The translations under genes and the position numbers were made by a program. This document shows, piece after piece, positions 211 to 48,959 of a stretch of 64,000 nt of DNA (positions within the stretch are counted from its first letter, which is position 1; each line of letters opens with the position of its first letter). This DNA comes from Anthoceros angustus (taxonomy: Eukaryota > Plantae > Anthocerotophyta). The DNA lies in the NCBI GenBank assembly GCA_010909165.1, contig MU008188.1, positions 723,766-787,765 of the forward strand. The letters are read 5' to 3'. The notes under the pieces are model-generated. The model was not told the origin of the DNA. It searched no databases and worked only from the letters and a program-made list of their open reading frames with translations.

Positions 211-338
211 GGCTTGGGCCTGGATCCATATCCCAACTTGCTACACGTGTCTTCCAAGATTTTGACATCGATGCCTTCCCTTAAGGAAGCCACCTGTGGC
301 CGTCTCCAGATGATGCATGCATCCAAGGTTCTTCTTAC

Positions 339-371
339 AACACGATAAATTTGCAAGGGGGTGAATATACA
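339..371 (+). repeat. Left terminal inverted repeat AACACGATAAATTTGCAAGGGGGTGAATATACA
   Basis: Exact reverse complement of 24224-24256; preceded by TTAC. Confidence 0.9.
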
Positions 372-496
372 AACCCTCTTCGATTGGGGTCGGACCCTCT
401 TGCACGCATGCAGCCCCATTTGGAAACCGCCTTCTGACGTTATATTGAAAACAGCGGGGAAATTCAGAAGTTCATATAGTGGCACACGACATGCCT

Positions 497-1817
497 ACAA
501 CATAGTTTTCAGTTCATTGTTACATGGGCGGCCCACGTCACTGTCGTTCATCTCAACATCCAAGCCATGGACTTCAATGTCCCGAACCACTGGCTGGCTG
601 ATTGTACAACAAAAAAACTTGATCAAGTAGGACCTATAGTTTCAACCTACCTACTCTAAATCGGAGGAATATGAAGTGGGCTCATTGCGACTCATGAGCG
701 CTGAGCCGTCACGACATTATGCTGTGATGTCCAGCAGAACATTGCTTGTGATCGTTCCGTCTCTCTTAAATCCATTGTTTTCTTCCAGGGCTCTGTCGTA
801 CTCGTCTCCTCGCTGGACTCCACCCCAGTGATTGCTCCCAAAACATTCAAAGTCTGCTGTCCACGTCTAAAGCTCTCCAGATTGTTCTCATCATTCTTTT
901 TCGCGATGAGGGGAACCACTAAAACCATCCTTCTCAACATACTCTTCGCCCAAAGGGAGGGGCCTCTCAGGTATCAGTGAGCTCTTCTTTGCGTGCAGTA
1001 GGACCTCGTGCCCATGGATGCGTTGCGAATATAGCACGCACACCTCAAGTCGCCTCGATGGCGTCTGGTGGCGTCCATAAAGCAAAATTTGCCAAAATGG
1101 TTGTCCAGCTCCACGAGCATGCTCCGTGGCCAGGTCTTCCTGTGAAAATGTCTTTATGAGCTTCATCATAGGCCAGGAGGCCTTTAGTGCAGACATACCA
1201 CCGAGCATCGTTAGAAGGTAAACACGCTTTTCACCACGTGTCATACTTACCAACCTCCCGTTGTTAAACATTAATCCATGGCATTCGGCATCATCGTGGC
1301 CCTATCCTTGGAACACCGTCCTTCACACCACCCTCGATCACGTACTCCACGGTTTCAAACCCTCCTTTGTCATTGCTCATGTTTGTCTTGGCATACAAAT
1401 GAACCATACCTCCTTTCACTGCACCACTTCCTCATGGGCTCTCTATGTGTGGGCTTCCTCCACACACCATGCATACTTGATAATCCGATACTCTTAGCAT
1501 GTAGTTTTCTCCCAAAGCTGGAACCTGTACTCATACTTGTGATGTCCATCCTTTTGTCCATAGATCCTATATCAAAACCTCGGGGACATCCATGATCAAC
1601 AGGGCATAGTTTCGTCCTCTCAAATACCCCGCATATCCATTTTGGTTTTCGACGATGCCCTGTTTATTATACATGTTGGGACATTGAATCTGAAAAGCGG
1701 CTTCGGATCTTTGTCGGCCAAATCTCTTTGCTCATTCTCAAGTCCTTCAATTGTTCACTTGAATATAAAATGTTGGAAATCTCTGCGCTTTGTGTGAGGT
1801 TGTCCACATCCTTGATT
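497..1817 (-). pseudogene. C-terminal part of ParB-MTase gene: beta-class N4-cytosine/N6-adenine DNA methyltransferase domain (PF01555-like) plus acidic tail
   Basis: Read across frameshifts in beta-class order. Motif IV-like GRNYALLIMDVP-x-GFD (~1570-1615); YAKTNM..GFETVEYVIEG (~1330-1400); MMKLIKTFSQE-D..GAG/TTILAN/LLYGRH../AIE (motif I, ~1050-1170). Acceptor CAAG| at 1818. The 3' end at 497 is approximate. Confidence 0.72.
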
Positions 1818-1865
1818 CTTGCGTGAAACACAAGGGAATTAGAACGCACGCCGTCACGTTCGGGT

Positions 1866-1885
1866 AGAGGCGGCCGGCGCCCTCC
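1866..1885. repeat. Degenerate GC palindrome (AGAGGCGG|CCGGCGCCCTC); left inversion breakpoint
   Basis: Same core as 2897-2952; coding strand switches at this point. Confidence 0.7.
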
Positions 1886-1900
1886 TCTTGTTGAGAACAG

Positions 1901-2836
1901 CCCAAGGGCGTGGGGTTATGGGGCCGCGAGTTTTACCCCTGCTGTGCATGATTGATCCGACGGAATGCCCTGAGCTCGCCAGCCTGGACTGGAAGAAATT
2001 CAGGGCAAAGACATATGTCATGGGTGTCCTGGGTGGGAACCACACATATGCAGCCATGAAACATTTGGCAGACATCTCACCTGGGAAAAAACGCTTCCAA
2101 TATGTGGAGACACATGTGTACTGTGGCCTCACTGTGCAGGAGATGAGAGTACTCGCAACCGATCACAACATTATGTCGGACAAGCGGAGGAAGATGTCTT
2201 TTATAGAGCAAGTCAGGTACCTCAGGGATGAACTATTGATTGCGAAACGCGAAGGGGTACAAATGACGATGACTTGGAAATTCAACTTCTATAAGGTTCT
2301 GAACTTATTAAGGATGATGAGGCCCGTAACGACGATGTGTACAAACAAAACAAGGTGGACAACAGGACTCATATCTTATGCATAGCGAAGCAGGAGGGCA
2401 AAGTGTGGGAGAATATAGACAAGATCTTCTCAAAGTGGGAAGCTGGTGACCTGCCAGAGTAGAAGAGGCACAGCGCAGTGGGCACAAACAAGAAGGGAAA
2501 AGGGAAACGGAAGGTGACCGAAGAGTCGAAGAAAGTGGATGCAACATATGTGAAGCCGGAGGACATGTTGGCGAAGCCATGGAAGTCGTTTCAAGGTATT
2601 CCAGCGGGTGATTATGGTCAGCAGATTCTCATATCCGCTACGGAGAAGGTTCTGGCAGGCCTAATAGATTTGAAAGGGATGGATGACGACATTACCTTGC
2701 GAAAGAAATTCCATGTCATCCAAGTTGCTATGGCCAAACACTTGGGATGCTCATCGTTCGAGGAAGTCGGCTAGAATATCCACATCACTCCACTGACGAA
2801 ATGCTAGCTCGGTTTCAGACTCAATTCGCGGGAAAG
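1901..2836 (+). pseudogene. Inverted middle exon of ParB-MTase gene: ParB/Srx-like core and helical region
   Basis: GVMGPRVLPLLCMIDP...VLGGNHTYAAMKHL...VYCGLTVQEMRVLATDHN...MSFIEQVRYLRDEL (GNH motif of the ParB/Srx fold). Continues WENIDKIFSKWE...TQFAGK then donor GTATGG at 2837; acceptor AACAG| at 1900. Confidence 0.75.
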
Positions 2837-2896
2837 GTATGGGGGTGTCAGTTGTGCTTTGTGTTTTCCTCTGCTTGGTATGCAAATGTTTTGGGC

Positions 2897-2952
2897 AATC
2901 GGAATGGTAGGAGGGAGGGCGCCGGCCGGCGCCCCTCCCTACCATTCCGATT
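2897..2952. repeat. 56-bp near-perfect palindrome AATCGGAATGGTAG..GGCGCCGG|CCGGCGCC..CTACCATTCCGATT; right inversion breakpoint
   Basis: Arms read directly from the sequence; centre at 2925/2926. Both arms lie just inside GT-started introns pointing towards each other. Confidence 0.9.
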
Positions 2953-2979
2953 CTTGAGACACGGAATGGGCGGTCTCAC

Positions 2980-3876
2980 CCGTGCCAAATAGTTCGTCCA
3001 TGCTTCATCCACCCTTCTTATCTGAGCGTCAGGTGTTAGGTGCGACGCAGGACGTAAATTCTCCAACTTCACAAGAACTGTCTCAGGCACAACCTTCTTG
3101 GCGTAGGCAGATTCCCTGATGCGTGTCGGCGGGTCCTCATCCCGGATAGCGTCTTCCAGTCTTCCCTCGTATGTCGTGACATGAACCGTGCGGATGTCAA
3201 GCGACACTGCTCCCTCGGCTGTGCCAGCTTTGCGCCTCTTTCCCCTTTTCCCTGTCTCTAGTTCTTCGCCCGCGTCATGACGCCACCACTAGGATCATGG
3301 CGGCACTCCGCTTCCCAAGACAATAAACGGAGGCCCGGCGGAAGGCGCTGCCCTCCGGCCCCTTCATCGTCATTCACGGGCTGTATGGCCAGCTCCTCAC
3401 CTGTTTCGGGCCTACCTGTCGAGGCTGACGCTGGGGCGCCTGCCGGCCGGCACCCCAACCCATCTGCGGCATTTGGGAACTGGACAAACCAGTTCGGATT
3501 GGGTGTCACCATGTCCTGGACACCTCTTCCCTGCTGGAGGGCGCCGGCCGGCCGGTGCCCTGATCCTGATTGAGGATCATATCTAGCTGTCGGGACCTCC
3601 ATGGACTGCCCAGGCATATTGTAGTCGAACATGATGCACGTCCACTTTGCTCTACAGGCATAAGACTCTTCCAAATCATCATCCAGAACATCGAGAATCG
3701 ACCCATCGTCCTCATCTTCTGGACCCAATTCACTCCCTTCAGGGCTGGGTGCCTCCTCCTCATGCTCTTGGTGGTGAGCAGTACTCCGTCTCAACGCCAT
3801 AACCCTCGTGCTCCGGCCTGGGCATGTAATCTTCGCTTTTACGGAGGCGGATAAAAGCTCTTCCTACTTGAGTAGC
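2980..3876 (-). pseudogene. N-terminal part of ParB-MTase gene: acidic region and first ParB strand/helix
   Basis: VLVKLENLRPASHLTPDAQIRRVDEAWTNYLAR then donor GTGAGA (2979), resembling the ParB N-terminus (I..LRP...QPR..DE..L..L). Acceptor TTTTGCAG near 3877; upstream acidic EHEEE..EDEDD stretch. Confidence 0.6.
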
Positions 3877-4049
3877 CTGCAAAACAAAACACAAGATTCC
3901 ACAAAAAGGGTTATGCGTCAACGTTGCTTCCAGGAAGATGACACAGTGCATTGTTGCTAAAATCCAAAACCTTACCGTTTGCTCTCATCTGCAATCTCGA
4001 AACAATTGAACCAGCCTTGATGGCTCACATTTCTTTATGACAAGACCAT

Positions 4050-7000
4050 TGTGGAACGAAGAATTTTGGTCACCCCAGACGCGGAAGGGGGAGGCCCGGC
4101 GTAGGATGGGTTGTCAGTAGGTGGGAAGTAGGTAGGACGATGAGAGCAGTGGGAAGGTGGTCGGACGTCCAGGGGAAGTTCGGGGTTTGAGTGGTCAGTG
4201 AACTCGTGGGAGGATCGATACGGTAGGAAGCATGGGTAGATAGGAGCATATATAGGCATGATAGGTTCGAGTTCCTTGGACCATGGAATATTCGGGGATA
4301 AGAAGTTCCTTGAATTATTTAGATCGCATGGCTATATATGCCAAAGAAAGCTAAGTTGTAAATAGAAAATAGCTACGGGAGTTTTGCCGGACACGTGGCG
4401 ACCATCGAGGAGGCGCCATTAAGCGGTTGCATGTACACCAAATCACAGTTAGCAGTTTGAGTGGCGTTTTCGGCGTGACTGGCGGGATGGCGGCCGAAGA
4501 GTAAGGAGCTTACGCTCGAGGCGGGCGACTTGAGGCGATTACAGCGCGTGTCGGAGGGCCTGGAGGCGACAAGGGAGGCGGCAGGCGCAGCCGCGCAAGG
4601 AGAGAAGCGAAGGAGCGCATGCTGCTGAACAGTGTCTTGGTGAGAAGCTGAAGAGAGTCGGAGAGGGTCCAGAGGGCGTGGAGATGCTCAAGCGGAGGTG
4701 GGGAGGCGTGTTGGCGAAGGAAGAGCTTGGGCGTGAGGCAGCGGGTGGAGAAGCTGGAGGGAGATTGAAGGGCCAAGGCCACCTCTTGGCGGTTGTGTGG
4801 AGGCGGGTTGGAGGCACGGAAGTTTTCCCCTTGTCATCTCACCCAAACCACCACTTCTTTGCTCACCACTCTCTTAGCACGATAGATTACTCTCCAATCT
4901 CTCAATTTTGCTATCCTTGTGTGCTCCCACATGCGGATGGTGAAGATAGTGAGGATGGGATACTCCAGGAGGAAACCTCCAGCCACCACACAAGGGAAAG
5001 GAAGAAACACCCAATTCCAGGAGTTCGAGTGTAGGCGCTCCAAATTTCACCTCGAGATTTGGAGGCGTTAGGCTATCTGAGATGAAGATGGAATGGCTGT
5101 ACTTGGTGCACAGGTGGCACTTCGAGCCACCTTGGTTCGGGGTGTCTTGTGACAGATGAGAGTGACCAAGGCGGACGGCCAGCGGAGGATCTGACGGTCA
5201 AAGTCATCACAGGATGTGGAAGGTGCGACATTTCGGGATCGTGCGATCTAGGAAGCCCACAAGGGAGGGATCATTCCGGTATTCGATTCTCCAAGAATCG
5301 GATCCGGAGGAGGTTATGGTATGTTCCTCGACCAAAGGAGGAAGTATGGTCGCAAGGCAATGGGTGGAGGATCTCTAGCAAGGAAGTGGAATTTATTCGC
5401 CAAGATATGGCTAGGACGTCTTGTGGCGAGGAAGGCGTGCACAGGAAATTCCATTTAATGATGATGTATGAGATGTCTCGGAAGTTGGTGGATTGGGCCA
5501 CCATTACGTATGAACAGCGGTTGCGAACCATTTGGTGATGGAGGGAGCAAGAATCGGTTTGTCTCTACCTTCCTCGTACACCTATATCGGAGGAGGAGGT
5601 TCTTACTGACTGGAAGAAGCCAAGATAGAAGCTACTCAGTGAGGGTAGTGGAAGGGAGCCATCGCGGCCCGGAGAGGATGAAAGCAGGCGGAGGCCCCGG
5701 GTAGAGGCCACCACCACCCATGAATGATGGCTTCGGGATCGAGAACCCAGAGAAAGGGAAAGGGCCATGAAGCACCTCCTACGGAGGAAGGAGGAAAGAT
5801 CTGAGACCACCTACGGAGGTTGAGGATTGGTGCCAACAACACGGTGGTAGGGAGTGAACCCCCTGGTGGGACCCGGGAGGATGGAGGACCTACGGTGAGC
5901 TTCCTCCTACCAAAGAGGTAATGTAACGACTTGTTAGCTGATGGAGGCGGGTGGCGGAGCGCCGAGGCGTTGGTGACCTCACACACGCAGGAGGAGGCGA
6001 TGGGAAGTGTTTGAGCGGTAGGCATCCTCTGAGTGATTCTTGGTGAAGGAAGTGGGCAGGATCTATGGACGCCCTAGTGGACCCGTGTCGGGAGGTGGCG
6101 AGAGTTCGTCTTGAACTTGAGACCTCTGAGGAGGGGAGGATCAGGAAATTGAGGAGCTCGAAAACCACCTCAGAAAGCAACACTCCGTGCTAGATCGGCC
6201 AAGGCGGCGGGATGACCAAGTTGGTGAATGTGTGGAAATGATTGACCCGGGTCTTAGGCGGGAGGCAAAATCAGCCAAGAGGGCTGGAGTTAGGCGCCGG
6301 GAAGGAGGCGGAAGAAAAATTGGAAGCTAGCAAGGGTAGGAGGCATCGAGCAGCGAGGAGGAGGCGGCATCTAGAGGCCAATGGGACCTTGAAGACGAGA
6401 AGGACCTCCTACGAAAGAAGTTAGTCGCCATGGAGCAACGGAAGGAGCATTACAAGGGAAAATATGACAGCTTGGAGAAAGAACGACAAGGATGGGACAA
6501 TGTGACCAAGGGTCACAAAGAGGAGCTTCGTATTACGAGAGAACTTTTGGAGCAGCAACGCAAGAAGGCCGACGATCTTACCCACGCCTATGAGACGGAG
6601 GCAAGGAACTACCGGAAGGAAGTTTTAATGGCCCAACGATCTTTGGAAGGTCTGCAGGTCATTCGAGGGGAGCAGGCGAGGGCGACTGCGGCCATAGTAA
6701 AACGCATGGCGATGGAAGCCATGGAGAAGGATAAGGAGATTGGGAGACTTGCCCTGGAGTTGGAGGGAGCGGTAGTGGAGACAAAGGCCGCATTGGTAGG
6801 AGTGACAAATCAAAGCCGGTGGGACGAAAAGGCCATCCCACTAAGGGTCCGTGATCATGGACGACAAAAGAAGGAGAGTAGTAGGGTGGCGACCTATTAC
6901 AACAACCTCCTAGAAGCGATTGAGGAACGCCACAAAGGAGGACGATTAAGAAACAGACCTCACCGCCCCGACAGCGGAATGGCACCGGAGGTCAAAACTT

Positions 7001-8331
7001 TGAGTGTACAAGGAAAGGCAGTGGCGGACACAAACAAGCAAGTCAAGAAGCACCACGGCGACGCCAAGAGACCTCCGAGACGGTGGAGTCATAGGAAAAA
7101 GATGGTAGGATGGTACCAAAGTTCCTACTGTAGGAACTGCTGATGAGGAGGAGGACCTCAAGGAGGGTACCTCCTACGGTGAAACCCAGCCGTGGAGGGA
7201 AGGAACCCCATGGAGATCCGAAAGGTAGGAGACGAACCGCCTACCAAGAAGACGAAGATGAGGGGAGGAACCCATCGAGGATGAACGAGGAGGAATGGAA
7301 CCTCCTACCATGGAGGACCTACCAGAGGGGCCGAGGTAGAGCATACCAGTAGTCCCGAGAAGACTCTCGAGGAGGCAAGGCTAAGCGACCCATCAAGGGA
7401 AGACATTGAAGCCGCGAGGCGAATAAGAAAGAACGAGGATGTCAGAGGACCTTTTCTATAGGACGTTTTGTCCCAAGTGGTACACCTTGGGAAGTGTGAG
7501 TATTTAAGAGTGGCGGCAAGATAGACAGATAGGATATTCGTCAAGGTGAGCCGGACCGAGCCGAGAGGATGAACCAAGGGATAAGGATCCTATTGTTGGA
7601 CTTGGCAAGTCGCCTAGCATTAAACTAGCACGAGTGACCAATGACTCCCCACCTATAAAGGGAGGGTGGAAGATGAATAAACACCGCTTGCTTTGCACTT
7701 TCTTTCCTGCCATCCCTAGCTGACCGCCAAGCCGACGAGAAGGCTAAGGGTGGGGTTCTCGAGGCCCCTCGCTGGGGTTCGCCAACGCAGTTCCTCCTCG
7801 GAAAGATTGCTGGATATGCTTTGTGTTGTTGCTGGCCTCGCAGGGATCGGCGCCGACTACGCCGCGCTGTGTTTGTACACGCAATCGCCCGAGAGAAATA
7901 CCCGCCACGCCACCCTGTGCGCTTGTGTCGCAAGGAGGCGCAACCGCTAACGCTACGGTAGAGTTAGATTTGGGATCGAATGAAGTGAGTTTCATGTGTG
8001 TGGATTTGAACTATGTTTTGAGAATGGTGAAGAGGTTGGCAATGGTGATGTGTCGTTGTAGAGTGAGTTGATTAGAAGGGCAGGAGAGTGTTGGGGATAA
8101 GAAGGAAATCGAAGGCGTGGAGCGGGCCAGTAACCTGAACGATAACACCCGCTTGTTGCCCATCCGAGGACAAGTAGACCGGCTGAACGATGAGGAGTGA
8201 GAGAGTGAGAGGAACGACCGCAAAAACAATGCCCAAACCAAATCTCTTGGGATCTGTAACCTACGTGACCAACGCATCCGTGATAAGTGTACACCGAGGC
8301 GGCGCCTCCGGGTGACCGGAAACCGTCTACA
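4050..8331 (+). mobile_element. Solo giant LTR, family A (Ty3/gypsy-type, ~4.28 kb) containing an accessory ORF
   Basis: Starts TGTGGAACG, ends CTACA; TATA at 7654. GATAAGTGT motif near the 3' end is shared with family C. Degenerate TSD ACCAT/A-ACTAT. No PBS or PPT. Confidence 0.72.
5081..7143 (+). pseudogene. LTR-borne accessory ORF (plant mobile-domain-like region plus coiled coil), frameshifted
   Basis: GNGWRIS...VDWATITYEQ...VSTFLVHLY matches family C KN-W...PDWGLIMYEAY...LSTYLVHLW; coiled coil at 6430-7143. Confidence 0.6.
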
Positions 8332-10589
8332 AACTATTGAAGTCATCACATGAATACCCGTCTTTGCATGTCCACCTCCCGTGGCAATGTAATTTAACCT
8401 GCAGGCGGCTTAGTAACACACAAGATGCGGCCTTTAGGTTCTCCCTTGGTACATATCCGTGGTTGCCTCAAATAACTCCGACCCGCCTGCCTTTTGATTT
8501 GGCATGGCATCCTTGTACCCCTATAACCCACAAATTGTATAAGGTCCCATACTGCGGCTATTTTGCTTCTTCCCCGCACCAGCATCCAATCCTTTCTCCA
8601 CAACTACACTCGTGGGCTCGTTTTAAATACGCTTGATGTGCATTGTTTCATAGCTATATGAGATTGAATAGGAGCAGTACATGATTTTTTCTTCGCCGCC
8701 GTACAAACCTCGTCACCTCCGCGATCTCTCTCACAGTTTCGCTTCCTGCATGCGGTGGTCACGTAGCGCAAGCGTGCGTGGCCCGCCTCCATGACCACCA
8801 CTGACCTCCTGACACGGGCGGCCTGCCACTGCCAGGAGCCGGGAATTGAGGGTCCGTAATCCCTTGCCAGGGGCGTGACTAGGCTCCTCCCGCCTTCGTT
8901 GCCGTTCCTCCGGCTTCTCTCGCTCTTCTTCGGTTTCTCAGACCGGGGCGGATCAAGGGCCAAAGCATCGCCACCTCTCCTTTCGCTTTCATGTCGCTTC
9001 CCATCGCCATTACCGCCTCTTCGGGCCGCTGTAAACCGTAATACGTACACTCAGTGCCATTCAAGAGATGCGGAATCAAGAGCATGCAGCTGGAAAGGAG
9101 CGAACCTCGCTCTCACCGGCAAAGGATGAAGGCAAGAAAGTTTTGGAATTCACCGATCAGAAGCTGAAGGGCGATCTTCCAAAGCATGCCCAACCAGCCG
9201 GAAGGTCGCTTTGATTTCTTAAACTCGCTGTCATGGTCAAAGGAACGCGAATCAGTGGTTCAATCCCGATCATTGCGTACACTCGATCAATATATTAGGG
9301 TCACATGTGTTCCAAAAGATTATACCATGAACCCGTGTAGACTTAGGCACAGCGAAGCGACACTGGTGTCACACCCGCCGCCAGCCAGATTCCCTGTATG
9401 CCACAGATATCCGACTTCCTGACATTCGGCCGAGGAGGCTGCTGATGCCTCAATGGGCTATTGCAATAACCGGGCTCAGCCGCCCGGGTGTGTGCATAAG
9501 TTAGCAACCCCGACACCTCCCACTGGAACGCAGTCCATCGCCTGCATGATGTATGGATGGAGCATGTAGACATGACAGCGACCGGCTCAGCCTCTGTGAG
9601 TTCTAAGGTCCCTCACCGGGCGCAATGTTGAGAACATGCACACAATTCCGACGATGAAGTGGGTGTCAGCCACGACTTTGTATAGTCCGCTTTCACGGTG
9701 AGTTGTTTCTTGTTTCTCATAAATAAGCCAAGAACCTTCTTCCTACATACGCCGCCCATGAAGAAGGCCAAGACCAATCTCAATTATCTCCGGTTCTGAC
9801 GCTGGCGACATATGCGTAAGGCGAGTGGATGGATGAACAACCCGCCGACCGTACCTATGCCCCTGCGTAAACCAGTTGCCGGACCTATCTGTGATTCTCC
9901 TGGCATGATGTTTGACCCGGAAGGGAGAGAACTAGAACATCAATTGAAATAGGGAACCGCGTAATGGCTACCGTGAAACAGACGACCGGACTCCAGACAT
10001 GCGTGCTTGGCAGCTTGGCTGGAAGACGTAAGTCAGTCACATTACCTAAGACATCGGTTTAAGGGACTAGCGAATTGTATTCCATAATGACCTTTGATTG
10101 TTTGGGCGTTTGGTGACACAGTAATGCTGAATGCCTGCGAATGTGCGTATACGTATTGACAAGGTCGTCACGGTTACGGCGATTTCAAGCAATTTTATCA
10201 CCCAACTCTTCACGATCTGCTCCACAAACTCCTCGCACCCACTTGTACCGCCATGGAGGGAAGGCTCACATTTAGTAAACAGGAAGGCAATGATGACAAG
10301 AGGATGGATGTCCATCCGATCAGTCTCCTTTTTGCAAGACGCGGATTGTCTAACAATGTGTGGATGATGGATGATATTGCCGCCCAAGCCTGGTGGCTCA
10401 TCTTGTGCAAAAGCAGGAAGAAGAGGACGACACCAACCGTATGCCAAGTGTGAAGAGGAGCTTGGCCAACGCTCGCTTTATGCGAAACCTTCGATGCAAA
10501 CGGCCTGCGTTGTACATTATGGATCTTCGTCGCATCATGACGCTTGGATGTCAAAATGTGCATTGAGGAAAAGTGATAAAGGCGCTTAT

Positions 10590-10768
10590 CAAGGCCGAGT
10601 TTTGAAACCATGTTGCAATGACATGTGTCCGTGATAGGTTAACGAAAAGAAAAATTTCAAGAAGAAATAAGTATCGCTTTTCCTCACAGCATGGAAGATG
10701 GCACGTGAGACATTTCTCTGGAAACCTTGATGTACGTCCGTGAGGGAATGAGGCGAAGGAAAGTGGTT
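10590..10768 (+). pseudogene. Transposase N-terminal Cys region, part 1 (continues at 15252 after removing the LTR)
   Basis: KPCCNDMC...AWKMA..EGMRRRKVV joins in frame across the TSD to PVTVITAIKCCLRHLEEKVLPISHK. Confidence 0.45.
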
Positions 10769-13700: not shown

Positions 13701-15246
13701 TAAGAAGCCGGTCCACCTTGAGGAAGGCGGAAGGCGGGCGGGCAAGCCGCGCAACTGGCCAAGGGAGTTGGAGCAGTGGAGCAACAATGACGCTGGAGGT
13801 GACCGAGGCACCTGGGCGAGAAGGCATTCAGCCTTATCAAACTCGGAGGTGGACCAATGCGGCAAAGACGCCACCCGAGCACCTATGGCGAAGGGAGACG
13901 GTGCCCGGCACACGTGAAGAGGCAATCCAACAAGTGGATTCTGGACTTTGCCTATTACTACCGAGCCCTGCAGAGAGGCCTCATCAGAAATGCACCCGAC
14001 CTGAAGGCCTGGAGGGGAAGAAGGCACGGGGACAAAGACAGTGGACTCCTAGGGCCCTGCTTGAGACGACGCAATGGGGAGAAGAGCCTCAAGAGGAGCG
14101 GGACGAACCCCCTGAGGTAAGTTCACCGCAACCCGCCTCAGAGAAGGGAGGACGGGCCCGAAGGGTGCGGAGGAGCCAACCCACCCAAGACAAGGGCCTG
14201 GGTAGGGAGGAGGACCTAGCAAGACGAGGTCCACAAGGGGTCCGGAGCTTGGGGACCGGAATAAGTTCGGACCGAGGTCCGAACCTCAGAGACCAGGCCG
14301 GACCCACCGGACCTGGGAAATAAGCCGACCCTGAGTTCAGACGAGTCGAGACCTGACTCGAGGTCCTGCCCAAAGAAGTGAGGAGCCCCTTCGACTTACG
14401 CTGGGGAGCATAGTGGCCCCACCGGAGGGGACCCACGGGAGGCTGGGAGGATGACGCCGCGGCACGGGTCATCACGCCACGAGCCCAACCCGACAGTGAT
14501 TCCGGAGAGAGGAGGTCTACCGCTGATCATCCGATTGCGCCAGAATCGTCGGGAGATTGACCACCAATCCCAAGGCGAACCTGACCTTCCTACCCCACCG
14601 CCGAAGGGGAGAGAATAGGGGTGGCGGCCGACAGGTATACCGAAATGGCCATCACCGTAATAGGGGTGTAATAAAGACGCCGACTGGGCGTAGTATAAGA
14701 GGGTCATCAATAAATCATCTTTCTTGGTGTTGATGCTGCTTGCGACAATTTTGTGTGTCTTCTGCTAACGTGAGTCCCGAGTCACCGAGCAGCAATGGCG
14801 AGAGATTGACTGGGTCCCGTGACGACTCCAACGTTGTGGTGGTGTGTGAGGGTGGGACCTGCGGCTCGGGCCCCGCCCAGCCGGGCCGAATCGGACCGAA
14901 CGCAGAGGAGGGACTCGGGGCGGCAGAGCCCTGGACGGAGAGGCCCCAGAGAACGACCTGAGGAGGTCCTGATCAAGGCCTTTTCCCTAAGACCGATAAG
15001 GTGTAGTGGGAGGGAGAGAGGAACGACGAGGTGGAGTGACTTAACGTGAACGAAACGACGCGAACGTCTCTAAACGCTTGGCCATACCGGCCCGGCGTGA
15101 TTTGTCAGGTAGTTAGACGAATCGAGAATGTGCGCTGGAACTAAAGTAAGACGAGATCGCTAAACAGAACGGAGTCCTATTCCTTTGGGAACGACTCTTC
15201 CTACAACGACACGGGATTGTGTACCAACAAAAGTGCCGCCGCCACA
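10769..15246 (+). mobile_element. Solo giant LTR, family B copy 1 (4478 bp) containing an accessory ORF
   Basis: TGTGG...CCACA termini; perfect TSD TGGTT (10764-10768, 15247-15251); TATA at 14694; colinear with 16596-20912. Confidence 0.9.
11440..14320 (+). pseudogene. LTR-borne accessory ORF of family B copy 1, frameshifted
   Basis: EPWNRGAQHCD...DHL..NLTVFSHALQW.EEADWEGLSLLSWEARKL...LPIHVWGHF, then a Glu/Arg-rich coiled-coil region. End is approximate. Confidence 0.5.
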
Positions 15247-15251
15247 TGGTT

Positions 15252-16595
15252 CCTGTTACAGTAATCACCGCTATCAAATGCTGTTTACGGCATTTAGAAG
15301 AGAAAGTTTTACCCATCAGTCACAAAAGGTATGAGGGAATTAAAGAGTGGTGGTCAGTCCTAATGCACCAGCGGGACTGTCAAGCTTGAAGGCCAACCCT
15401 ATATGTAAGACCCACGCACGCAGAAAGGGGCCAGTAGCTTGGCCGGACTGTTTTTTAAGATGGGCGTAGTAGAGGTCAGCCGACGTGGAGGTCTTCAATC
15501 TTCCGACACATACACGGGTTGAGATATGGCTCAAAGATAATACAATGTGAGATATTCATGTACATGGGTTTGTAGAATATACGCCATGCCGTTCCCAAAT
15601 TGTGGAAAACATACTCAAAGCAGAAAGTGAAGATAATCAAGTCCAATCGATTAACGTGGCTTCTCACCGGCCAGTTGAAAGCAACAATACGGAATACTCA
15701 CCTCCAAAGAGGATCATGGCGCTTGAACCGCAATAAACCTTCCTCTTTCTAGAATACCGCCGCTAAGGAAGGGGACTCAGACCGGCGGGCGCGATTCGAA
15801 GGGTTGGTCAGGGTTGGTGTCTGCAGGTGGAGGATAAGGAACTGAGTTCATTACCGATAGTATCGTACCGTTCAACATCCTCCCTGCAGATGCACTTTCT
15901 TATATCATCGTCTGCTGTATGTGGTGTTGGGGTTCCACATTTACCGATGACGCGGTAACTTGATGTGGTTGTATGAGGGCGTGAGGGCGCCGGCCGGTTT
16001 CCTACCTGCGTTAACAATTCATCCAAGACACTTGGTTTGATGTCAAAGTGCCATCCTCATCAAAGTCGCCTTTCAATGAGTTTGCTGGAAGAAAGTTCAA
16101 TCGATGCGAGATTGCCTCAGATCTGTGGGCCTCGCTGTGGCAGCCTGTTTAGGAAGCTGAAAAGGCCAAACGCTTAATATCTTTATCCTATGTTGTTTGC
16201 AGAGGAAGTACCAGGCACATAGAGCGCCTATATGCAGAAGGCAAAGATGCTAAACACCAAGATTACGTTGAACCGCAAGTATATATGTTATTATCTATTG
16301 ATGATATGGAGATGTAAATACCCCATTTTTGGGTGGCTAAGAACCAGAAGAGGAAAGTCAATTTCGGGCCCATGTTGTGGGTGCTTATTTTACAACTAAG
16401 CGTGATAAACCGTGATTTTCACATGCATTATGCTAACTTCGAGATGATGCCTTGACCGGGGTTCGCAAAGTTTTATACTTGCAGGTTGGACAACATGCGG
16501 GAGGATAAGAACCAATATTATTGTATGACTTAAATATGCTTGTGGACATGGGGACTTTCCAGAAAGTGAAGGTGGGCTTCCTACTAGTTGGGCAC
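15252..16595 (+). pseudogene. DUF7869/Sola-like transposase, part 2 (zinc-binding region and first two catalytic Asp)
   Basis: C..RCGSLFRKL, YQAHRA..Y, YMLLSIDDME..PHF, VLYLQ/LDN..xNKNQY, MLVDMGTFQKVKVGFLLVGH at 16130-16595. 15400-16080 is not assignable. Confidence 0.72.
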
Positions 16596-19500
16596 TGTGG
16601 ACTATGGACTTCCCTTGGGGGGTAGGAATTAAGTAGGGCTTTGTTTTTTTTGGTAGGTTGGAATAGTAAAATAAGGCGGAAAAGGAGGAATAAGCACGGA
16701 TGGCGCCTCCTGACCGACCGAGTATACCCGACTCGGAGTGGGCAACGACTCAACCACTATGGCGAAGCCCGACTACGCTAACGGATAAGTCCGACCCCAC
16801 CCGGTCAAAACAGATAAGTACGCCAGGAAAGTAACTTAGAAGTTGAGTCGTGAGGATGCATCGGCCGCCACGTGGACGGCCCCGAGTGGAGGTCGGGCAT
16901 GCAGCAGTGCCAGACGAGCTGTGGGCCGCAGGTATTCACGCCCGGACCGCGCGGCGCACAGAAGGCCGTAGCACGGCGTAAGGCCGAGGCGGAGGCGTAA
17001 GGTCGAGTAAGCCATGCACTGCGCTACGTGTGGAAGAGGCGCCTTCCCGCCTGCCTTACTTCCCACGCGGCCGAAGAGGGTCATTTCACGGCACCGACAA
17101 TTTCGCAGCCTCGCGCCCGCAACCCGCCTCGGCGCTATCTCTTTGAGCGCCCAGCATCTCGAGCGGCTCACCGCCGGGTTGGAGCAGCCGAACGCGAAGA
17201 GGGCGATCGCGCCGACTCCGCCGCCAGCCTACAAAGAACAAGGGAGAAGAAGGCGATGGCACCCAAAAAGGTCATGGAGGTCCGGGAGCCATGGAACCGT
17301 AGAGCGCAACATTGTGACCCGCGCTATCCGGACTTTGGGCCCCGCCGAGGAAGCGGGGAATTAGTCGAGGAGTGGCACTAGATGTGTTCCAGTCTCGACG
17401 CTTGACAACACTCCGTCCGGAGTTCGCTCAAGATGTTGGCGGCGGCCAACAAGGAGGTTCGTCCAAGAACCTCCGGGAGGATCCTAGGCGATGGACCTTG
17501 AGGTCCCGAGGGCGCCTACAACCGCCCAAAGGAGGAAGATGGGGCGAGTCCCGCAGCCCTCAAGGCGGGAAAGATAGGGCCAAGAATGGGCGCGCCGAGG
17601 CTCGAACGCAGGACAACCAACGGCGGTTGATATCGCACGACGCCGATAAGGGGGTCAGAGCCCGATCATTGTCCATTGAACTCGCCACCAAGGTGGATCA
17701 CCTTGGTGATAATTTGGTGTTCCCGCATGCGCACTGGGAAAGAGGGCGGACTGGGAAGGATTATCTTCGCCTGCTCACAGAGGCCCGCAAGCCGAGGAGC
17801 GAGAAGCCTCGCTCTGATCCCCATACCCGATCCATGTATGGGGACATGAGCTCAAGGAGGGAGAGATCGAGCGCCCCAAGAGGCCGGCGAGCGTGCAAGG
17901 GCGCCCGAGGTGGGGGCCACCCCTAAGGCCAAACGACCCGGAGGAGGACGACCGGAGGGATTCCGACCCATACGCCCGAACGGACCCCTCACCACCTGTG
18001 GAAGTATGGAAGAAATCCCCGCCTCTTCTCCCGGTGCCTCCTCCGAGCAACAACGCAGCAGAGGGAACGACGGAGCGAGTTGGCGGCAGCCCCAGAGCTC
18101 ACCCAAGAATCAGCCGAGCCCGACGACTCGGGCGGAACCAAGAGGCGCAAGACGCACCAACGCAAAGACTCGTGACGGTCTCTCCCCCGCCCACGAGTGG
18201 CAAGAGGTCAAGAGGCGTAAGGAGGGCGTAGCGCAGGAGCAGAGGTCACCGGCAGCCTGCACTCGAGCCTGCCCCCGGCTGTGAAGGGGCAAGGGCTAGC
18301 CCCGACCCCTCACCCTCCGAGCCCTGTGACTAAGAGGGCAAATAGGAATGCCAAGAGGGCCAAGGAGGGTGAAGCTCCGAGCCAAGACTCAGACCTAAGG
18401 GTCCCGATTAGGTCCGAGAACCCAGACCCGACTCCGGATCTGGTATGGAGGTCCTTGGCGGACCGTGAAATGCCCGCCTCCCACTACGGACTTTGTGGGG
18501 TCTCACTAAGGCCGTGGAAGAAACACGGCATGGTCCTACGCCATGGACGATGCTTTGGGGTCTCGGAGCCGAGAAGACCTGGAGGTAGAAGCCACCCGAG
18601 GGATGGTGCTCCTCCGTGAGCAGCTGGAGGGGCCCAGGAGGCAAGGAGGAAGGCTCCCGCATCGAGGAAGGGAAACGCAGGAGGCCGAGAGGGAAGTCCG
18701 TCCATCCGACAGACGACTAAATTCCTTCACCGGGTGAGCACGTGCATGTGAGGCCCAAGCACGGTCAAGACCTCGCAGCGGAGGGGAGTAGCGCAGCAGG
18801 AGGCGAGGAGGCCCGCAAGTGAGAAGGCTCGTGACCGGGCGAGGCGGCCTGACCGACCAGCGCCAAATGGGGCGAAGTGAAGGCGAGGGAGGCGTCACCG
18901 CTAAGATCGACCGCGATCACTATCGGCGTGATCGGAACCGTGGAGGGAGACGGCAGGATAGCCGCTAACTCAAGAAGGAGCAGGAGGCGGCGAGCACGGG
19001 CCACCCATGCCGAGGAGGAAGCACGCAAGGAGATGGAGGATCTCCTCCGCATGTGAGGTGGAGCGCCAAGGTGAGAGATGGAAGACCGCAAGAGAGTCAT
19101 AGCCCAAGTTACCATTGAGAGGAATGAATGCAGGCGTGATCGCGATCACGAACGAGAAATAGAGCGGCTCCTGCTGGGACGGAGGAAGTACGGCGATGGA
19201 ACAGGAGCGTGACGCCGCCAAATGGAGAAGGACTGGAGGCCCGCACGGGCAGAGTTGCCCGACCCTGGAGAGGGAGATGGAGTTAACACGAATGAACGAG
19301 GAGCGAGAGCACCGGACGCAAAGAAGCCGCCGTCCGGAAGGCGAAGGAGCGCCGCGCTATGGTAAGCTAGCAGAGCAAACGACGGAGCCGGAGCAAAGTG
19401 AGCAACAGCAGTGAGGTGACCGAGGCGCCTTGTAGCCTCGCATGACGGCCTCCCACAAACCCGGCAGGGAGGTGGTCCAACAAGCCGGGCAAGAGACGCC

Positions 19501-20912
19501 TCCGAACACCCATGGCGAAGGGAGACGGTGCTCCGCACACGTGGAAGAGGCACCAACAAGTTGATTGACTTTTGCCTATTACCACGCCGAGCTCCTTAAG
19601 ACATTGCCCTCCCGCCGCCCGCAAATAGACGGACCGGAAGGCCTGGGGGAAGGGCATGGGGACAAAGACGGGACTCTAGTGGCCCCGCTTGGAGACGAGG
19701 GGAGAGAAGTGAGGAGGACGCGCCAATACAACGAATCCTGTGGTAAGTCCGCCGCAACCCGCCGGAAGATAGAGGCGGGGCCTGAAGGAGGAGGAAGCCA
19801 AACCACCCAAGACAAGGGTCGGGATGAGGACCCAGCAAGAGGTCCGGGTAAGGGGTCCGGAGTTTGGACCGACTATTAATAAGTTCTGACCGAGGTCCGA
19901 ACCCCGAGATGAGACCGACCAGCAGACCTGACTCAGAAGGCGACTCCCGACCGAGTCGAGACCGACCTCGAGGTCCGACTCAGAAGCAAGGAGGAGTCCC
20001 TCCGACTTACGCTGGGGAGCATACAATGGGTCTTCTCGAGGGGACCCACCGGGGCTGGGGAACGACGTTGTGGTAACGGCGGCCGCCGCATCACGGTAGA
20101 GCCCAACCCGACAGTGATTCCGGAAGAGGAAGGGGTCCCCGCGATCATCCGATTGCGCCAGAACTGCCGTGCCGGAGATTGACCACCAATCCCGAGGCGG
20201 AACCCGGACCTTCCCAGCCCACCGACGAAGGAGATAGGAGGGGAGGAATAGGATGGTAGGCCGATTAGGGCATCGAAATGGCCACCCGTAATAGGGTGTA
20301 AAGGCGCCGACCGCGTAGTATAAGAGGGCCGAGGTCGCCTAAGTAAAGTCATCTTCTCTTGGTGTTGATGCCGCTTCGCACCCTTGTGCGCCTTCTTGCT
20401 AACGTGAGTCCCGAGTCATCGAAAGGTGCACACCCGAGAGACCGATCAAGGTTCCGTGACTGACTAACGGTGGTGGTGTGCAGAAGGGTGACCGGGGACC
20501 CGTGTTCGTCTGTAGGGCCGCCCAACACGAACGGGACCGAATGTGTGAGCTGGAGGAACCCGGAGGGCGTGTAGAGCCCGGAGAGGCCCGAACGATGAGG
20601 AGGTCCTGACCGTAGCCCCGCTTTTCCCTAAGACCGATGAGTGTAGCGTGAGTGGAGAGAGAACGGACTAGAGGTGTAAGTGACGAACGTGAACGTATAC
20701 TTGGACGCCAACGGGTCCTTAAACGTTTGGCCACACCGCCTCGGTGAAGCGCTGGTGGTAGTTAGGCAAGGAATGTGCGTTGGAGTTTGAACGGACGCAG
20801 CGAAGTGAGAATCGTCAACGCGCAAGCAGACTATCATTCCCCTTGGGAACCGGGACTCCTTCCATAACGACCTGATTGTCATGCGCATTTGGCCGTCCCG
20901 AAGTCGCGCACA
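16596..20912 (+). mobile_element. Solo giant LTR, family B copy 2 (~4.3 kb), inserted inside the transposase GH|TH motif
   Basis: Starts TGTGGAC right after GGGCAC; TATA at 20319; colinear with copy 1. Right end is noisy and duplicated (second end near 22191, followed by AGCAC resembling TSD GGCAC). Confidence 0.8.
17257..19900 (+). pseudogene. LTR-borne accessory ORF of family B copy 2 (starts MAPKK), frameshifted
   Basis: MAPKKVMEVREPWNRRAQHCDPRYPDFGP...KVDHLGDNLVFPHA; coiled coil MEQERDAAKW..EREMELTRMNEER. End is approximate. Confidence 0.5.
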
Positions 20913-22790
20913 GTAATAATACGATCGTATTGATCGATGTTTTCGTGTTTCACAAAACATTGAAACACAAGGAAGCACACATTGATGAGTTGACCCATAT
21001 TCTTGTTGGTGCGCATACACTCCCACACCAAGTGAAACCGCTGACTAAGTTGCAAATTTTGGACATGTGTGGCCTATTCAAGAGGGGAAGGTCAAATGTA
21101 TACCGCCGTAAGGAGACTAAACAATCTATCGCTCCAGCACCACCAAGATAACTCGGAGGAAAACAAGACAGAGGGCTAGTCACCGTAATCCAAGCAAGAT
21201 TCAACGCCGCCTCATTGGGAAATGTTCGTGGTTAGAGTTCAAGTTCGCCCCATTGATGCCATTATCGCAAAGACCGATGATGGCATTGCGGGCGAGGGAC
21301 AAGAAGGGCCGATCCGGGTTAAGGCCAATCAAGGAGTCGCCATTTGAAAGCCGGGCTTCGCTTTGAGGTCAGATGAGACAACATGAGCAACGTGTGGGAA
21401 GCTCGAAGGACCAAGAGGAGATTGTCCGCCATTGTGGAAAATAATATCCGATTAGGTGCCGCAAGCTCGAGGAGATTGGACCACCAATCCGTGAACCCGG
21501 ACCTTCCCCACGAGCGAAGGAGATAGGAGGAGGAATAGGATGGTAGGCGATTAGGGCGTCTTGGTGCCACCGGCTCGAATAGGGTGTAATAAAGGCGCCG
21601 ACCTTGCGTAGTATAAGAGTGAAATTGCTCTAAGTAAAGTATCTTTCTCTTGGTGTTGATGCGCGTTTCTTGCGGACCCTTGTGCGTCTTCTTAACGTGA
21701 GTCTGAGTCAGCGAGCACGGCGGCCGGAGGCCCGATCAAGGTTACGGTGGACCCTAACGTGTGGTGGTGTGTGCGAGGGAAGGTGGCGGGGACCCGTGTT
21801 CGTCGAGCGGTGGCCCAGTCGAGCGGACGGGCAGTGTGAGCGGAGGACTCGGGAGGCGTGTAGAGCCGGACGGAGAGCCCGGCGAGCAGCGGAGGTCGGG
21901 ATGTAGCCCGCGTTTTCCCTAAGGCCCGATGAGTGTAGCGTGAGTGGAGAAGAGCGGACTAGAGGTGCAAGTGACGTCTGAGTCTGACGCGACGGGTCCT
22001 TAAACGTTTAGCCACACACTGTCACGGTGAAGCGTTGCGAGTAGTTAGGCGGCGGTGATGAATGTGCGTTGAGTGAGCAGACGCAAAGTGAAGTGAGAAT
22101 CGTCAACGGCAAGCGAACTATCATTCCCCAGGAGCGGACTCCTTCCTCTACGACACGGGATTGTCACCTGGCCCGTCCCGGTAGTCGCATACTGAGCACA
22201 TGATCAGATTGATCAGATGTTTTCGTGTTTCACGAAAACCTTGAAACACAAGGAAGCACACACATTGGATGAGTTGACCCATATTCTTGTTGGTGCGTAC
22301 ACTCCCACACTCGAAGTGAAACTGTTGACGGAAGTTGCAAATTTTCGGACATGTGTGTGGCCTATTCGAAGAGGGGAAGGTCGGCAAATGTATATCGCGG
22401 CGGTAAGGAGACTAAACGATCTATCGTTCCAGCACCAGTTCAAGATAACTCGGGAGGAAAAACAAGACAGAGGGCTAGTCACCGTAATCCGAAGCAAGCA
22501 GTATTCAACGTCGCCTCATTGGGAAACAGATTCAGGGTTAGAGTTCCTGAAGTTCGTCCCATTGGATGCCATTACTGCAGCACCGATGATGGCATTGCGG
22601 GCGAGGGACAAGAAGGGCTCCGATCCAGGGTTAAGGCTAACTGAAGGAGTCGCTCATTTGAAAGCTGGGCTTTCTGCTTTGAGGCCGTATGTGACAACAG
22701 TTGAGTACAACCAGTGGGAAGCTTTCTGGAAGGACCAAGAGGAGATTGCTGTCATTGTGGAAAATAATATCGGGTTAGCCTTGCAGGAAC
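20174..22790 (+). repeat. ~1.3-kb tandem duplication (LTR 3' end plus transposase segment); possibly an assembly artefact
   Basis: 20174-21470 repeats as 21471-22790; GGAGATTG lies at the junction; the copies differ mostly by small indels. Confidence 0.8.
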
Positions 22791-23100
22791 CATGGAAATG
22801 GTATTCCAGAACTAATGTAGAAGTGACAGCTTCACCTCTTCATGTCCCTGACGAAGCATTGCTAGAGGAAGCTTTGATGAGGGACCTACCACAGCGGGAT
22901 ATGTATTTGGGAGCATACCAAAATGTTGGTAAATAGGAGGAAATGGCTGCGAATGGGGATGTGAAATCAAGAAAGGATGGTTCATCGCAACACCATGCCA
23001 TACGTATACCTTGATCACAATGACCATTTTGGATAGGGAGGTAGCCGATGTCGATTGGTGCCCCACGCCCCACTTCTCGCCCATTGGTATAGAACCGAGG
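22200..23100 (+). pseudogene. DUF7869/Sola-like transposase, part 3 (third catalytic Asp and C-terminal domain)
   Basis: HDQIDQMFSCFTKTL completes GH-TH-D-x-ID-QMFS. 239-aa ORF 22217-22936; then EIKKGWFIA..PFWIG..HWY across frameshifts. Confidence 0.78.
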
Positions 23101-23598
23101 CATACTGAGATGCGTTTGAAGGCGTTATGTGGAAGAGTATATAGTATGCGAGGGCAATAATCACCAACCGGTCATGAGCGCGGTAAGAAAGGGCCCAAGG
23201 TTTATATCCCAAGAATATGCGGAGCTATATGTAAACGAAAGCGGTATTGCTTTACTACGGATTTAACCTCACGTCACTAAAACATGTCTGCCGTGGACAA
23301 AAAAAAGCTATCGTGATAAGTTAAATGAATTAGAGGATTTATAGAACCCGCCGAGTGTATTGGGCGGGAAAGGGACGAATAAGCATTGACAGCTCCGCCT
23401 GTGGGTGTGTTGGAGTGAATGAGTAGGATGGATGTGGACGCAGAAACGGGCTTCGTAATAGTGAGAGAGAACATACTTTTGCAAAATGTGAGAGGATTAA
23501 AAACGTGTTGGTTTGAGGGAAACTATTCCATGTAGTCCGGGGTCCGAATGAATTTTTGTTATAGTTCCTCGTGGCACACCTTCGGAGTTTTTCTTTTT

Positions 23599-23674
23599 GT
23601 GCATATGACACAGCTTATGTTGCTTTAAGGACGGCGTCTTTCCAACACTGCACTTCCCGCCATTCTTGGTTATA
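23599..23674 (-). pseudogene. WRC-type zinc finger (C-x9-C-x10/11-C-x2-H), cargo gene remnant
   Basis: Reconstructed (C/Y)NQKNGGKWQCWKDAVLKQHKLCHMH using three 1-bp corrections; compare WRC CxRTDGKKWRC...KYCERH. Confidence 0.5.
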
Positions 23675-24223
23675 CTTTAATGGATAGGGAAAGGGACATT
23701 GCATGAGCTTTGTCGTCCTGCGGCAGCTGAATGGCCGCCAATTAAACGATCGGGTGAGTTCCATGTCATGCTCATTCCACTAAAGCTATCCAAAGAACCA
23801 TTGTCGCAAAGACTAGAACAGGGAGGGGCATTCCTGAAATAGTGCGTGGGAAGCGAACATGTGAGCCGTACTTTGTCCTTCGGTTAAGAGAGGGCGCCGG
23901 GGCGCGCCTCCCCACACTCTAGAAACGCTGCCATCACTTTAAGACCACATCTAAAGAGCTGAGTTCGATGTTCTCCCTTAGAACCCTACTTGAAGGGGAG
24001 TAAGAACTAGTAACACCGCATGAATGGTCCACCACATGGGTCCGATTATAAGGAAAGGGTAAAGTGGAACTAAACCTTCACATGCTCCGACATCAAGAAC
24101 ACAATACAACCAATGGTGGGATACCATGTTTTGGTGCTACATTTGATGGGAATCCCCGTAGACGCATGTTTAACACCCATGTGGAACCCTCTTCGGAGGA
24201 TAAAAGGCACTCAACCCCCAACG

Positions 24224-24256
24224 TGTATATTCACCCCCTTGCAAATTTATCGTGTT
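24224..24256 (-). repeat. Right terminal inverted repeat
   Basis: TGTATATTCACCCCCTTGCAAATTTATCGTGTT followed by TTAC. Confidence 0.9.
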
Positions 24257-24485
24257 TTACTAAATGGTGGCTGCGGCCACAGGTTAAATTCTCGCGTTGC
24301 TGCGGCCACAGGTTAAATTCTCGCTGCACATGAGACAATAATAGTCCATGAAATGATACAATCATACAATGTAAGTAGAGGACATTCATATTATTTATGA
24401 AAGAAGTGTTAAATGCAAATGTCATGTTTTGTACCTTCGGTTTGAGAGAGTTCTTCAATGCGAGACATTAGTTATATAAATAAAG

Positions 24486-24585
24486 CTTGACTTGACTTGA
24501 CTTGACTTGACTTGACTTGACTTGACTTGACTTGACTTGACTTGACTTGACTTGACTTGACTTGACTTGACTTGACTTGACTTGA
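24486..24585. repeat. (CTTGA)20 pentanucleotide microsatellite
   Basis: Perfect tandem array. Confidence 0.97.
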
Positions 24586-48755: not shown

Positions 48756-48959
48756 TGGGAACGCAAAAGTTTGGGCAAATGTTTAAATGAGTTTGTTTTG
48801 GAACAGCCCACACTCTTTGCTAGAAATGGTTTGGTGAAGACATGCAAGGAAATTTTTGCCTTTTTGAGGAGTTGTAGGACCATGTCGGAAGGCAAAGGAT
48901 ATGCGAAAAGAAACGGGTCAAAACGACCTGGTGAGGAGAAAAGGTAACCTACATGAGTG

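Follow-up and report, generated by a model that had tools for sequence, protein, structure and literature searches.

A single element, delimited by terminal inverted repeats (TIRs) and a target site duplication (TSD), was found at 339-24256 of a 64-kb stretch of the Anthoceros angustus genome (assembly GCA_010909165.1, contig MU008188.1, positions 723,766 to 787,765; this whole stretch of 64,000 nucleotides is referred to as the window). The interval is probably one dead, non-autonomous copy of a TIR-type cut-and-paste DNA transposon, belonging to a family that carries two genes: one for a DUF7869 transposase, and one for a ParB-like/amino-methyltransferase fusion protein. The two inverted arms, read directly from the window, were identical at 33 of 33 positions, and the same tetranucleotide, TTAC, stood immediately outside each of them (Table 1). 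The 33-bp sequence occurred only twice in the window, namely as this pair, and no chance match was obtained across 100 dinucleotide-preserving shuffles, even when 3 mismatches were allowed. The gross length was 23.9 kb; when the nested blocks were subtracted, a net length of ~9.54 kb remained, which compares with 9,544-9,642 bp in the intact copies from Riccia sorocarpa (see below). The perfect 33-bp TIRs, the TTAC/TTAC duplication and the net length of about 9.5 kb, all of which had been claimed in the original prediction (made from the letters of the window without database searches), were reproduced. TIRs, a TSD of constant length (4 bp) and an RNase H-like transposase encoded inside (broken in the window copy), all of which were observed here, are features of Class II TIR elements. 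Two known superfamilies were considered and rejected: for piggyBac, DDE_Tnp_1_7 had no Pfam match in the window and the 4-bp TSDs are not TTAA; for PIF/Harbinger, DDE_Tnp_4 had no Pfam match in the window and the TSDs are 4 bp, not the 3-bp TWA.

All stop-to-stop open reading frames (ORFs) reaching a minimum length (50 aa in 339-11235, 54 aa in 11236-24400) were scanned against Pfam, and only one genuine match was found in the element: PF25273 (DUF7869), at 22196-22933 on the plus strand (E = 5.4e-11). Together with a further piece at ~16150-16594, this agrees with the DDD transposase that had been placed on the plus strand. The first acidic motif, IDDMEM (16297-16314), was directly followed by a stop codon (16315-16317), and the second, LDNMREDKN (16486-16512), was in another frame, with a frameshift between the two. 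Broken by frameshifts, stops, an LTR-like insertion (LTR, long terminal repeat) and a duplication, the gene leaves no doubt about the earlier statement that this copy is dead. Among 1.8 billion representative proteins, 39 relatives of the window transposase were found (best E = 9e-29), two of which were annotated proteins of Riccia sorocarpa. An alignment of 20 DUF7869 relatives revealed the conserved motifs IDGMDQ, LQLDN and GHTH(D/E)xIDQ. In the AlphaFold2 model of the Riccia transposase core (mean predicted local distance difference test score (pLDDT), 79.6; predicted template modelling score, 0.82), the strands and helices followed the RNase H order, and of the three acidic motifs, the first was on strand 1, the second on strand 4 and the third on the helix following strand 5. 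A Foldseek search of this model against PDB gave weak but consistent matches, mostly to RNase H-like folds (RNase HI, NurA, terminase nucleases and the IstA transposase), including a retroviral integrase at probability 1.0; on the other hand, the transposase profile found no match among the PDB sequences, and there was no close solved structure. Because of the motifs, the fold model and the Foldseek matches, as well as the TIRs and TSDs, these results support the assignment of the DUF7869 protein as a putative DDD/E cut-and-paste transposase.

The second gene was recognised at the opposite end of the element. Two segments of the plus strand, 1948-2280 and 2382-2765, matched the middle exon of the methylase gene at the Riccia locus L001 (tblastn, 2e-16), and the reciprocal search agreed. 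A family hidden Markov model (HMM), constructed with the row of the window left out, matched ORFs 1843-2382 (E = 1.9e-20), 2295-2459 (1.3e-3) and 2463-2771 (1.9e-3), which were collinear on the plus strand. Judged by this homology, the front half of the ParB-like/methyltransferase gene is securely present in the window. In the family, the N-terminal region shows a strand ending in VDP, followed by YV(I/L)GGNH..A and then by a strand with C.CI.Y.GLT..EA....DDN, a pattern as would be expected of a ParB/Srx N-terminal domain, with which PF01555 is usually combined in phages. The original prediction had described a ParB-methyltransferase gene on the minus strand, head-to-head with the transposase: the ParB-like front half was indeed present, but its strand and the layout were wrong, the recognisable piece being on the plus strand like the transposase. 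A remnant of a WRC finger, also proposed on the minus strand, did not hold up on either strand, neither as a profile match (PF08879), including a permissive Pfam scan of candidate ORFs, nor as the pattern C..DG..WRC...C..H. The minus-strand ORF 2851-3288 seemed to resemble the N-terminal region of the Riccia protein (QIRRV..IP), a likeness that was discarded because the family HMM gave no support to it.

The gene content of the family was read from five fetched loci of the liverwort Riccia sorocarpa (L001, L002, L005, L006 and L007). At L001, the DUF7869 gene was head-to-head with a gene for a 689-aa protein matching PF01555, whose middle exon contained the invariant VLGGNH motif. The same head-to-head pair was found at L005 and L007 and was rearranged at L002; L006 contained no annotated DUF7869 gene, and a DUF7869-like sequence was located near its methylase gene. 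With the methyltransferase frame of Riccia as the query, at least 28 annotated Riccia paralogues on many chromosomes were found, together with two distant sequences from other samples. PF01555 was above the gathering cut-off in P0052 (45.6 bits versus a cut-off of 26.7), P0056, P0067 and P0068. In the Riccia enzyme, motif IV (D[VI]PYGF) is upstream of motif I (DLCxGSG), the FxGxG-type motif for binding S-adenosylmethionine. In the hhalign comparison with 120 phage-type ParB/PF01555 fusions (probability 94.8, E = 5e-8), D[VI]PYGF was aligned with DPPYG, and DLCxGSG with DLFGGSG; PHROG_67 matched the Riccia methyltransferase at 1e-18. The predicted product of the second Riccia gene may be described as a protein in which a helical linker connects an N-terminal, ParB-like domain to an amino-methyltransferase domain of the beta class (PF01555), the latter having its relatives in the ParB-methylase fusions of phages.

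Element ends were defined in Riccia by comparing loci. Three complete copies (L002, L007 and L005) had TIRs of ~24-40 bp, starting with AACA or a one-base variant, and perfect 4-bp TSDs, with both genes inside. The co-occurrence of methyltransferase and transposase between TIRs with 4-bp TSDs, which had been suggested as a check on the original prediction, was thus observed in three copies, and the claim of a multi-gene cut-and-paste element was borne out at the level of the family. Between L002 and L007, the ratio of nonsynonymous to synonymous substitution rates (dN/dS) was 0.09 in the ParB-like part and 0.19 in the methyltransferase, the latter over 339 codons with a dS of 0.42. The second gene is under purifying selection; therefore, the protein was kept functional while the element diversified. 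A more distant locus, L011 (128-2813; Logan SRR18067573, an unrelated sample), contained a PF01555 gene tail-to-tail with a DUF7869 gene; the former was intron-less and 35% identical to that of Riccia, and its 347-aa product was without the ParB-like part. No methylase was found within 2.8 kb upstream of the DUF7869 gene at L004, a metagenomic locus, and one further candidate relative (L003/P0028) was rejected as low-complexity noise.

Table 1. Coordinates of the features in the window and in the Riccia sorocarpa loci
Sequence	Feature	Position	Strand	Remarks
Window	Left TSD	335-338		TTAC, read directly; same as right TSD
Window	Left TIR, 33 bp	339-371	+	Starts AACA, as do Riccia TIRs; 33/33 against right arm
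Window	Possible remnants of methyltransferase catalytic domain	894-1663	-	'GVW.KP' block in ORF 1373-1663; 'KLIKTFSQE-D..GAG..GR' motif-I-like block in ORF 894-1301
Window	15-bp perfect inverted repeat bracketing the ParB-like piece	1871-1885 / 2914-2928		Left arm / right arm
Window	Pseudogene of ParB-like domain (VLGGNH motif) and helical linker	1948-2771	+	Three frames: ORFs 1843-2382, 2295-2459 and 2463-2771
Window	GC-rich 56-nt near-perfect palindrome	2897-2952		Contains right arm 2914-2928
Window	Purine-skewed block, ~4.3 kb, presumed nested insertion	~3950-8250		GC and AT skew switch at ~3950 and ~8250
Window	LTR-like block A, solo-LTR-type insertion	10769-15246	+	TG..CA ends; perfect 5-bp TSD TGGTT at 10764-10768 / 15247-15251; 73% identical to block B
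Window	Putative transposase catalytic core, part 1, ending ..LLVGH	16153-16594	+	tblastn from 15 relatives; HMM E = 8e-9; frame translations
Window	LTR-like block B and duplicated junction	16595-22195	+	Interrupts transposase motif GH/THDQID; homologous to block A
Window	Tandem duplication (20174-21455 / 21471-22778)	20174-22778		78% identity; includes right junction of block B and transposase
Window	Putative transposase, part 2, HDQIDQMFS.. to C-terminal region	22196-23041	+	PF25273 (5.4e-11); tblastn; HMM E = 3e-46
Window	Right TIR	24224-24256	-	Perfect partner of left arm
Window	Right TSD	24257-24260		TTAC
L002	Complete copy, 9,544 bp	5147-14690		TSD CATT
L007	Complete copy, 9,585 bp	2730-12314		TSD TGTT
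L005	Complete copy, 9,642 bp	3166-12807		TSD ATAG
L001	Palindrome TGTATGCGCGCATACA	4565-14849		
L002	Palindrome CCATGCGNCGCATGG	5500-14312		
L007	Palindrome CCATGCGNCGCATGG	3092-12033		
L006	Palindrome TCATGCGNCGCATGA	3894-13699		
L005	Palindromes CATGGACGTCCATG and CCATGAGNCTCATGG	3617-11136		

The two genes of a canonical Riccia copy are read towards the ends of the element: the methylase has its C-terminus ~0.4 kb from one TIR, and the transposase C-terminal homology stops ~1.2 kb short of the other. In the window, the transposase homology stopped 1.2 kb from the right TIR, and the weak, possible methylase remnants (see below) were at the left end on the minus strand, as predicted from this layout; the ParB-like/linker piece between them was on the plus strand. 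Because this piece lies between the arms of a perfect 15-bp inverted repeat, the ParB-like part appears to have been inverted. In Riccia, an inversion of ~1.9 kb, comprising the 5' portion of the methylase gene with its ParB-like sequence, separates L002 (7543-9402) from L007 (8044-9951), and covers the same part of the gene as the apparent inversion in the window (1871-2928), with different breakpoints.

Each Riccia subfamily carried its own palindrome of 15-16 bp, in 14-29 copies per element (Table 1). The copies formed short arrays, often with periods of 27, 42 or 63 bp, which were located within introns and the divergent promoter region as well as close to either end; no palindrome was found in 12-14 kb of the flanks of L002 and L007, for which the ends were defined and one type of motif was present. 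In the window, there were only a few copies of GC-rich palindromes. These palindromes could be binding sites of the transposase or of the ParB-like domain, targets of methylation, or both. In active copies, excision and reinsertion of the element by the transposase would involve a staggered cut of 4 bp. The methyltransferase would be active and act for the element, most likely by methylating sites in the element's own DNA, for which the subfamily-specific palindromes of the Riccia copies would be the best candidates, and such self-methylation could tune transcription or transposition, or blunt silencing by the host. Taken together, we tentatively propose an undescribed plant lineage of transposons (DUF7869, AACA termini and 4-bp TSDs), which may be related to Sola and may possess a self-contained DNA-marking system: a selected, phage-derived ParB-like/amino-methyltransferase, with palindrome arrays as targets, would write N6-methyladenine (6mA) or N4-methylcytosine (4mC) on the element, which would thus control its own activity or avoid being silenced by the host.

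Several observations weigh against the explanation of the interval given here, the first of which concern the methyltransferase of the window copy. It had been expected that PF01555 and ParB would be recovered from the window by profile searches; neither PF01555 nor ParBc (PF02195) matched any of the scanned ORFs, and the Riccia exons bearing D[VI]PYGF and QK(S/P)..DLCxGSG found nothing in the window by tblastn (E up to 20). Motif searches of the window for (D/N/S)PP(Y/F/W/H) and FxGxG also gave nothing credible. The two minus-strand blocks at 894-1663 were collinear, with E-values at the noise level by hmmsearch (32 and 40). In a frameshift-tolerant profile scan, this region scored 32.8 (571 for the Riccia control), which was the third-best of ~100 window positions on both strands (202 scores), and with hhalign, the two blocks fell at the profile positions and in the sequence that were expected (P = 0.017 and 0.039). 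The blocks are suggestive only of possible methyltransferase remnants (p ~0.03), with no demonstrable domain, and the catalytic part of the window copy has likely decayed past secure recognition. Similarly, the inversion of the ParB-like part is the simplest reading suggested by relatives, not an event seen in this lineage.

Formal tests of the ParB identity of the N-terminal domain were weak. The domain had no match in Pfam and, when the ORF and the family profile were used as queries, no ParB match was obtained in PDB either; the AlphaFold2 model of this domain was too poor to use (pLDDT, 43), and its Foldseek matches, 6 of 50 of which were Spo0J, Noc and ParB, were non-significant. A PHROG ParB-like family matched weakly (E = 0.056) on the GGNH motif, and hhalign against ParB gave a weak alignment (P = 0.05-0.07) on the block 'C.I..GLT..A....DN'. 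The domain is probably ParB-like, with a fold assignment that is unproven. Furthermore, motif IV was DVPY or DIPY in all five Riccia loci, and not the canonical (D/S/N)PP(Y/F), leaving the activity and the base specificity of the Riccia enzyme as predictions only. The self-marking role of the methyltransferase is something that we infer, and is best taken as a tentative proposal.

Among the alternatives, the one that survives best is that the lineage of the window never possessed a methyltransferase domain: the element would have encoded the ParB-like protein alone, in the same direction as the transposase, and the blocks at 894-1663 would be due to chance. The absence of a PF01555 signal across the window and the location of both recognisable gene pieces on the plus strand are in line with this, as is the annotation of L002, where the ParB-like part is a gene of its own (370 aa) on the strand of the transposase. 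However, the layout of L002 derives from an L007-like head-to-head gene by the ~1.9 kb inversion, and the piece in the window includes the linker by which the ParB-like part is joined to the methyltransferase in Riccia; moreover, the weak remnants agreed with the prediction in their position, strand and order, and the net length was equal to that of the methylase-bearing copies. We therefore consider this alternative rather unlikely, and prefer the decay of a complete fusion gene.

It is far less probable that the Riccia methyltransferase is a host (or host-domesticated) gene merely near DUF7869 genes and outside the mobile unit. Its annotation as ordinary hypothetical proteins and its purifying selection would also fit a host gene, but both genes were within one 9.5-kb unit bounded by TIRs and TSDs at three loci on different chromosomes, the paralogues numbered at least 28, and the linkage of the two genes recurred in the unrelated sample (L011). 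That the TIR/TTAC pair is a product of chance or rearrangement, and the interval not one transposon, is hardly credible: there was a single TIR pair in 64 kb and the interior is pieced together from repeats that are unrelated to one another, but the shuffles gave no match at up to 3 mismatches, the AACA termini and the 4-bp length of the TSD agree with the three Riccia copies, the same pair of genes was found inside, and the net length matched.

The difference between the gross and net lengths was caused by nested blocks. A BLAST self-comparison revealed two GC-rich, purine-skewed blocks of ~4.3-4.5 kb, 10788-15095 and 16623-20744, which were 73% alike. The alignment of the transposase broke off at 16594-16598 and resumed at 22196-22199, on either side of the second block. 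Three solo LTRs had been claimed: block A was confirmed as a solo-LTR-type insertion by its ends and TSD and block B as LTR-like, whereas the third was visible by composition only. Subtracting this third block (~3950-8250) yields the canonical 9.5 kb; a low-stringency self-BLAST found nothing similar to it elsewhere in the window, and a search of its ends found no TG..CA termini with a 5-bp TSD. It contained an open frame of 267 aa (6340-7140, plus strand) with coiled-coil character and no Pfam match. The internal duplication, also described beforehand, was found as 20174-21455 and 21471-22778. All 66 bases of the TIRs and 8 bases of the TSD were unchanged, although the internal duplicates were 78% alike and the genes were full of stops; assuming ~11% change per copy, the probability of unchanged ends was ~3e-4. 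Because the TIRs and TSD were perfect while the internal parts were old, the already decayed 23.9-kb composite, nested blocks included, was probably mobilised in trans, and an active relative would therefore have been present in the genome of Anthoceros angustus not long ago.

We know of no methyltransferase passenger gene reported for the Sola superfamily. According to the portion of the literature summarised in PMC10741241 (after Bao et al. 2009), Sola elements have a DDD transposase, a 4-bp TSD, a length of 2-9 kb (sometimes >15 kb) and variable TIRs, and have been reported in a moss; the TSD, transposase and size fit the present family, a likeness by description only. There was no Sola model in Pfam as of 2017 (PMC5751038). 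A preference for AWWT targets is a hallmark of Sola1 (PMC3845634), and is not seen in the TSDs of this family (TTAC, CATT, TGTT and ATAG).

Fusions of a ParB-like nuclease domain with an N6_N4 methylase (PF02195 and PF01555) in phages and plasmids, such as that of Vibrio phage 1.213.O (AUR95847.1), have the same domain order, and their methyltransferase domains are homologous to those of Riccia, as indicated by the hhalign and PHROG_67 matches. The plant proteins differ from them in an additional helical linker of ~170 aa, in their introns and in motif IV, which reads D[VI]PY rather than DPPY, and their N-terminal domain was below significance against ParB models. The MpDN4MT1a/b proteins of Marchantia and N4CMT of bdelloid rotifers are also bacterial-type beta-class amino-methyltransferases in eukaryotes, the former likewise in a liverwort; however, these are host genes, with TSPPY in MpDN4MT1 in contrast to D[VI]PY in the Riccia family, and the homologue search with the Riccia enzyme, in which the two were not compared directly, yielded no Marchantia protein.

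Mobile elements carrying a gene for a base-modifying enzyme include the KDZ/Plavaka elements in fungi, with TET/JBP genes, and some retrotransposons with C5-methyltransferases. DIRS1, with an inactive methylase domain (PMC4738411), is likewise such an element. Unlike all of these, the Riccia family combines an amino-methyltransferase (6mA or 4mC class) with a DUF7869 cut-and-paste carrier in a liverwort host. A review of eukaryotic adenine methylases described ParB-linked methylases in haptophytes, chlorophytes and chytrids, and none in bryophyte transposons (PMC4738411). In the papers covered by our literature search, no PF01555 gene was reported from a transposon of a plant. Control of transposition by amino-methylation is known from bacteria: in IS10/Tn10 and IS50/Tn5, Dam methylation of internal sites controls the expression of the transposase and the activity of the ends. 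There, the methylase is owned by the host, whereas a Riccia-type element would bring its own, and the comparison is one of pure analogy.

Amino-methylation of DNA (6mA and 4mC) is rare and disputed in eukaryotes, and the origin of its writers is open. The present family is a mobile element that keeps a predicted amino-methyltransferase of bacterial or phage type under selection and, if the reading above is true, such elements could bring bacterial amino-methyltransferases into plant genomes. Since a telomere-to-telomere assembly of the host Riccia sorocarpa has been published, the methylation of the transposon DNA, its base, motif and purpose are testable, and the element-confined palindromes are concrete candidate targets. 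The window copy itself is an ordinary wreck that adds little on function; it shows the family in a second plant genome, apparently movable as a 24-kb composite and decaying by inversions of the kind also seen in Riccia.

The surroundings of the element consisted of repeat-rich plant DNA. Directly to the left, a 118-bp repeat (37-154) recurred at 35816-35933, 35 kb away, with 92% identity, and directly to the right was a (CTTGA)n microsatellite of ~21 units (24486-24590). The region 24300-64000 contained Copia-type gag, integrase and reverse transcriptase frames (e.g. 42976-43794, plus strand), one Neprosin frame and one ribosomal L7Ae-like frame. Two direct repeats of 5 kb (48763-53825 and 57434-62481), 90% alike, 8.7 kb apart and strongly purine-skewed, probably represent the LTR pair of one large retrotransposon, and carried arrays of the palindrome TCCTACC(A/G)TGGTAGGA.

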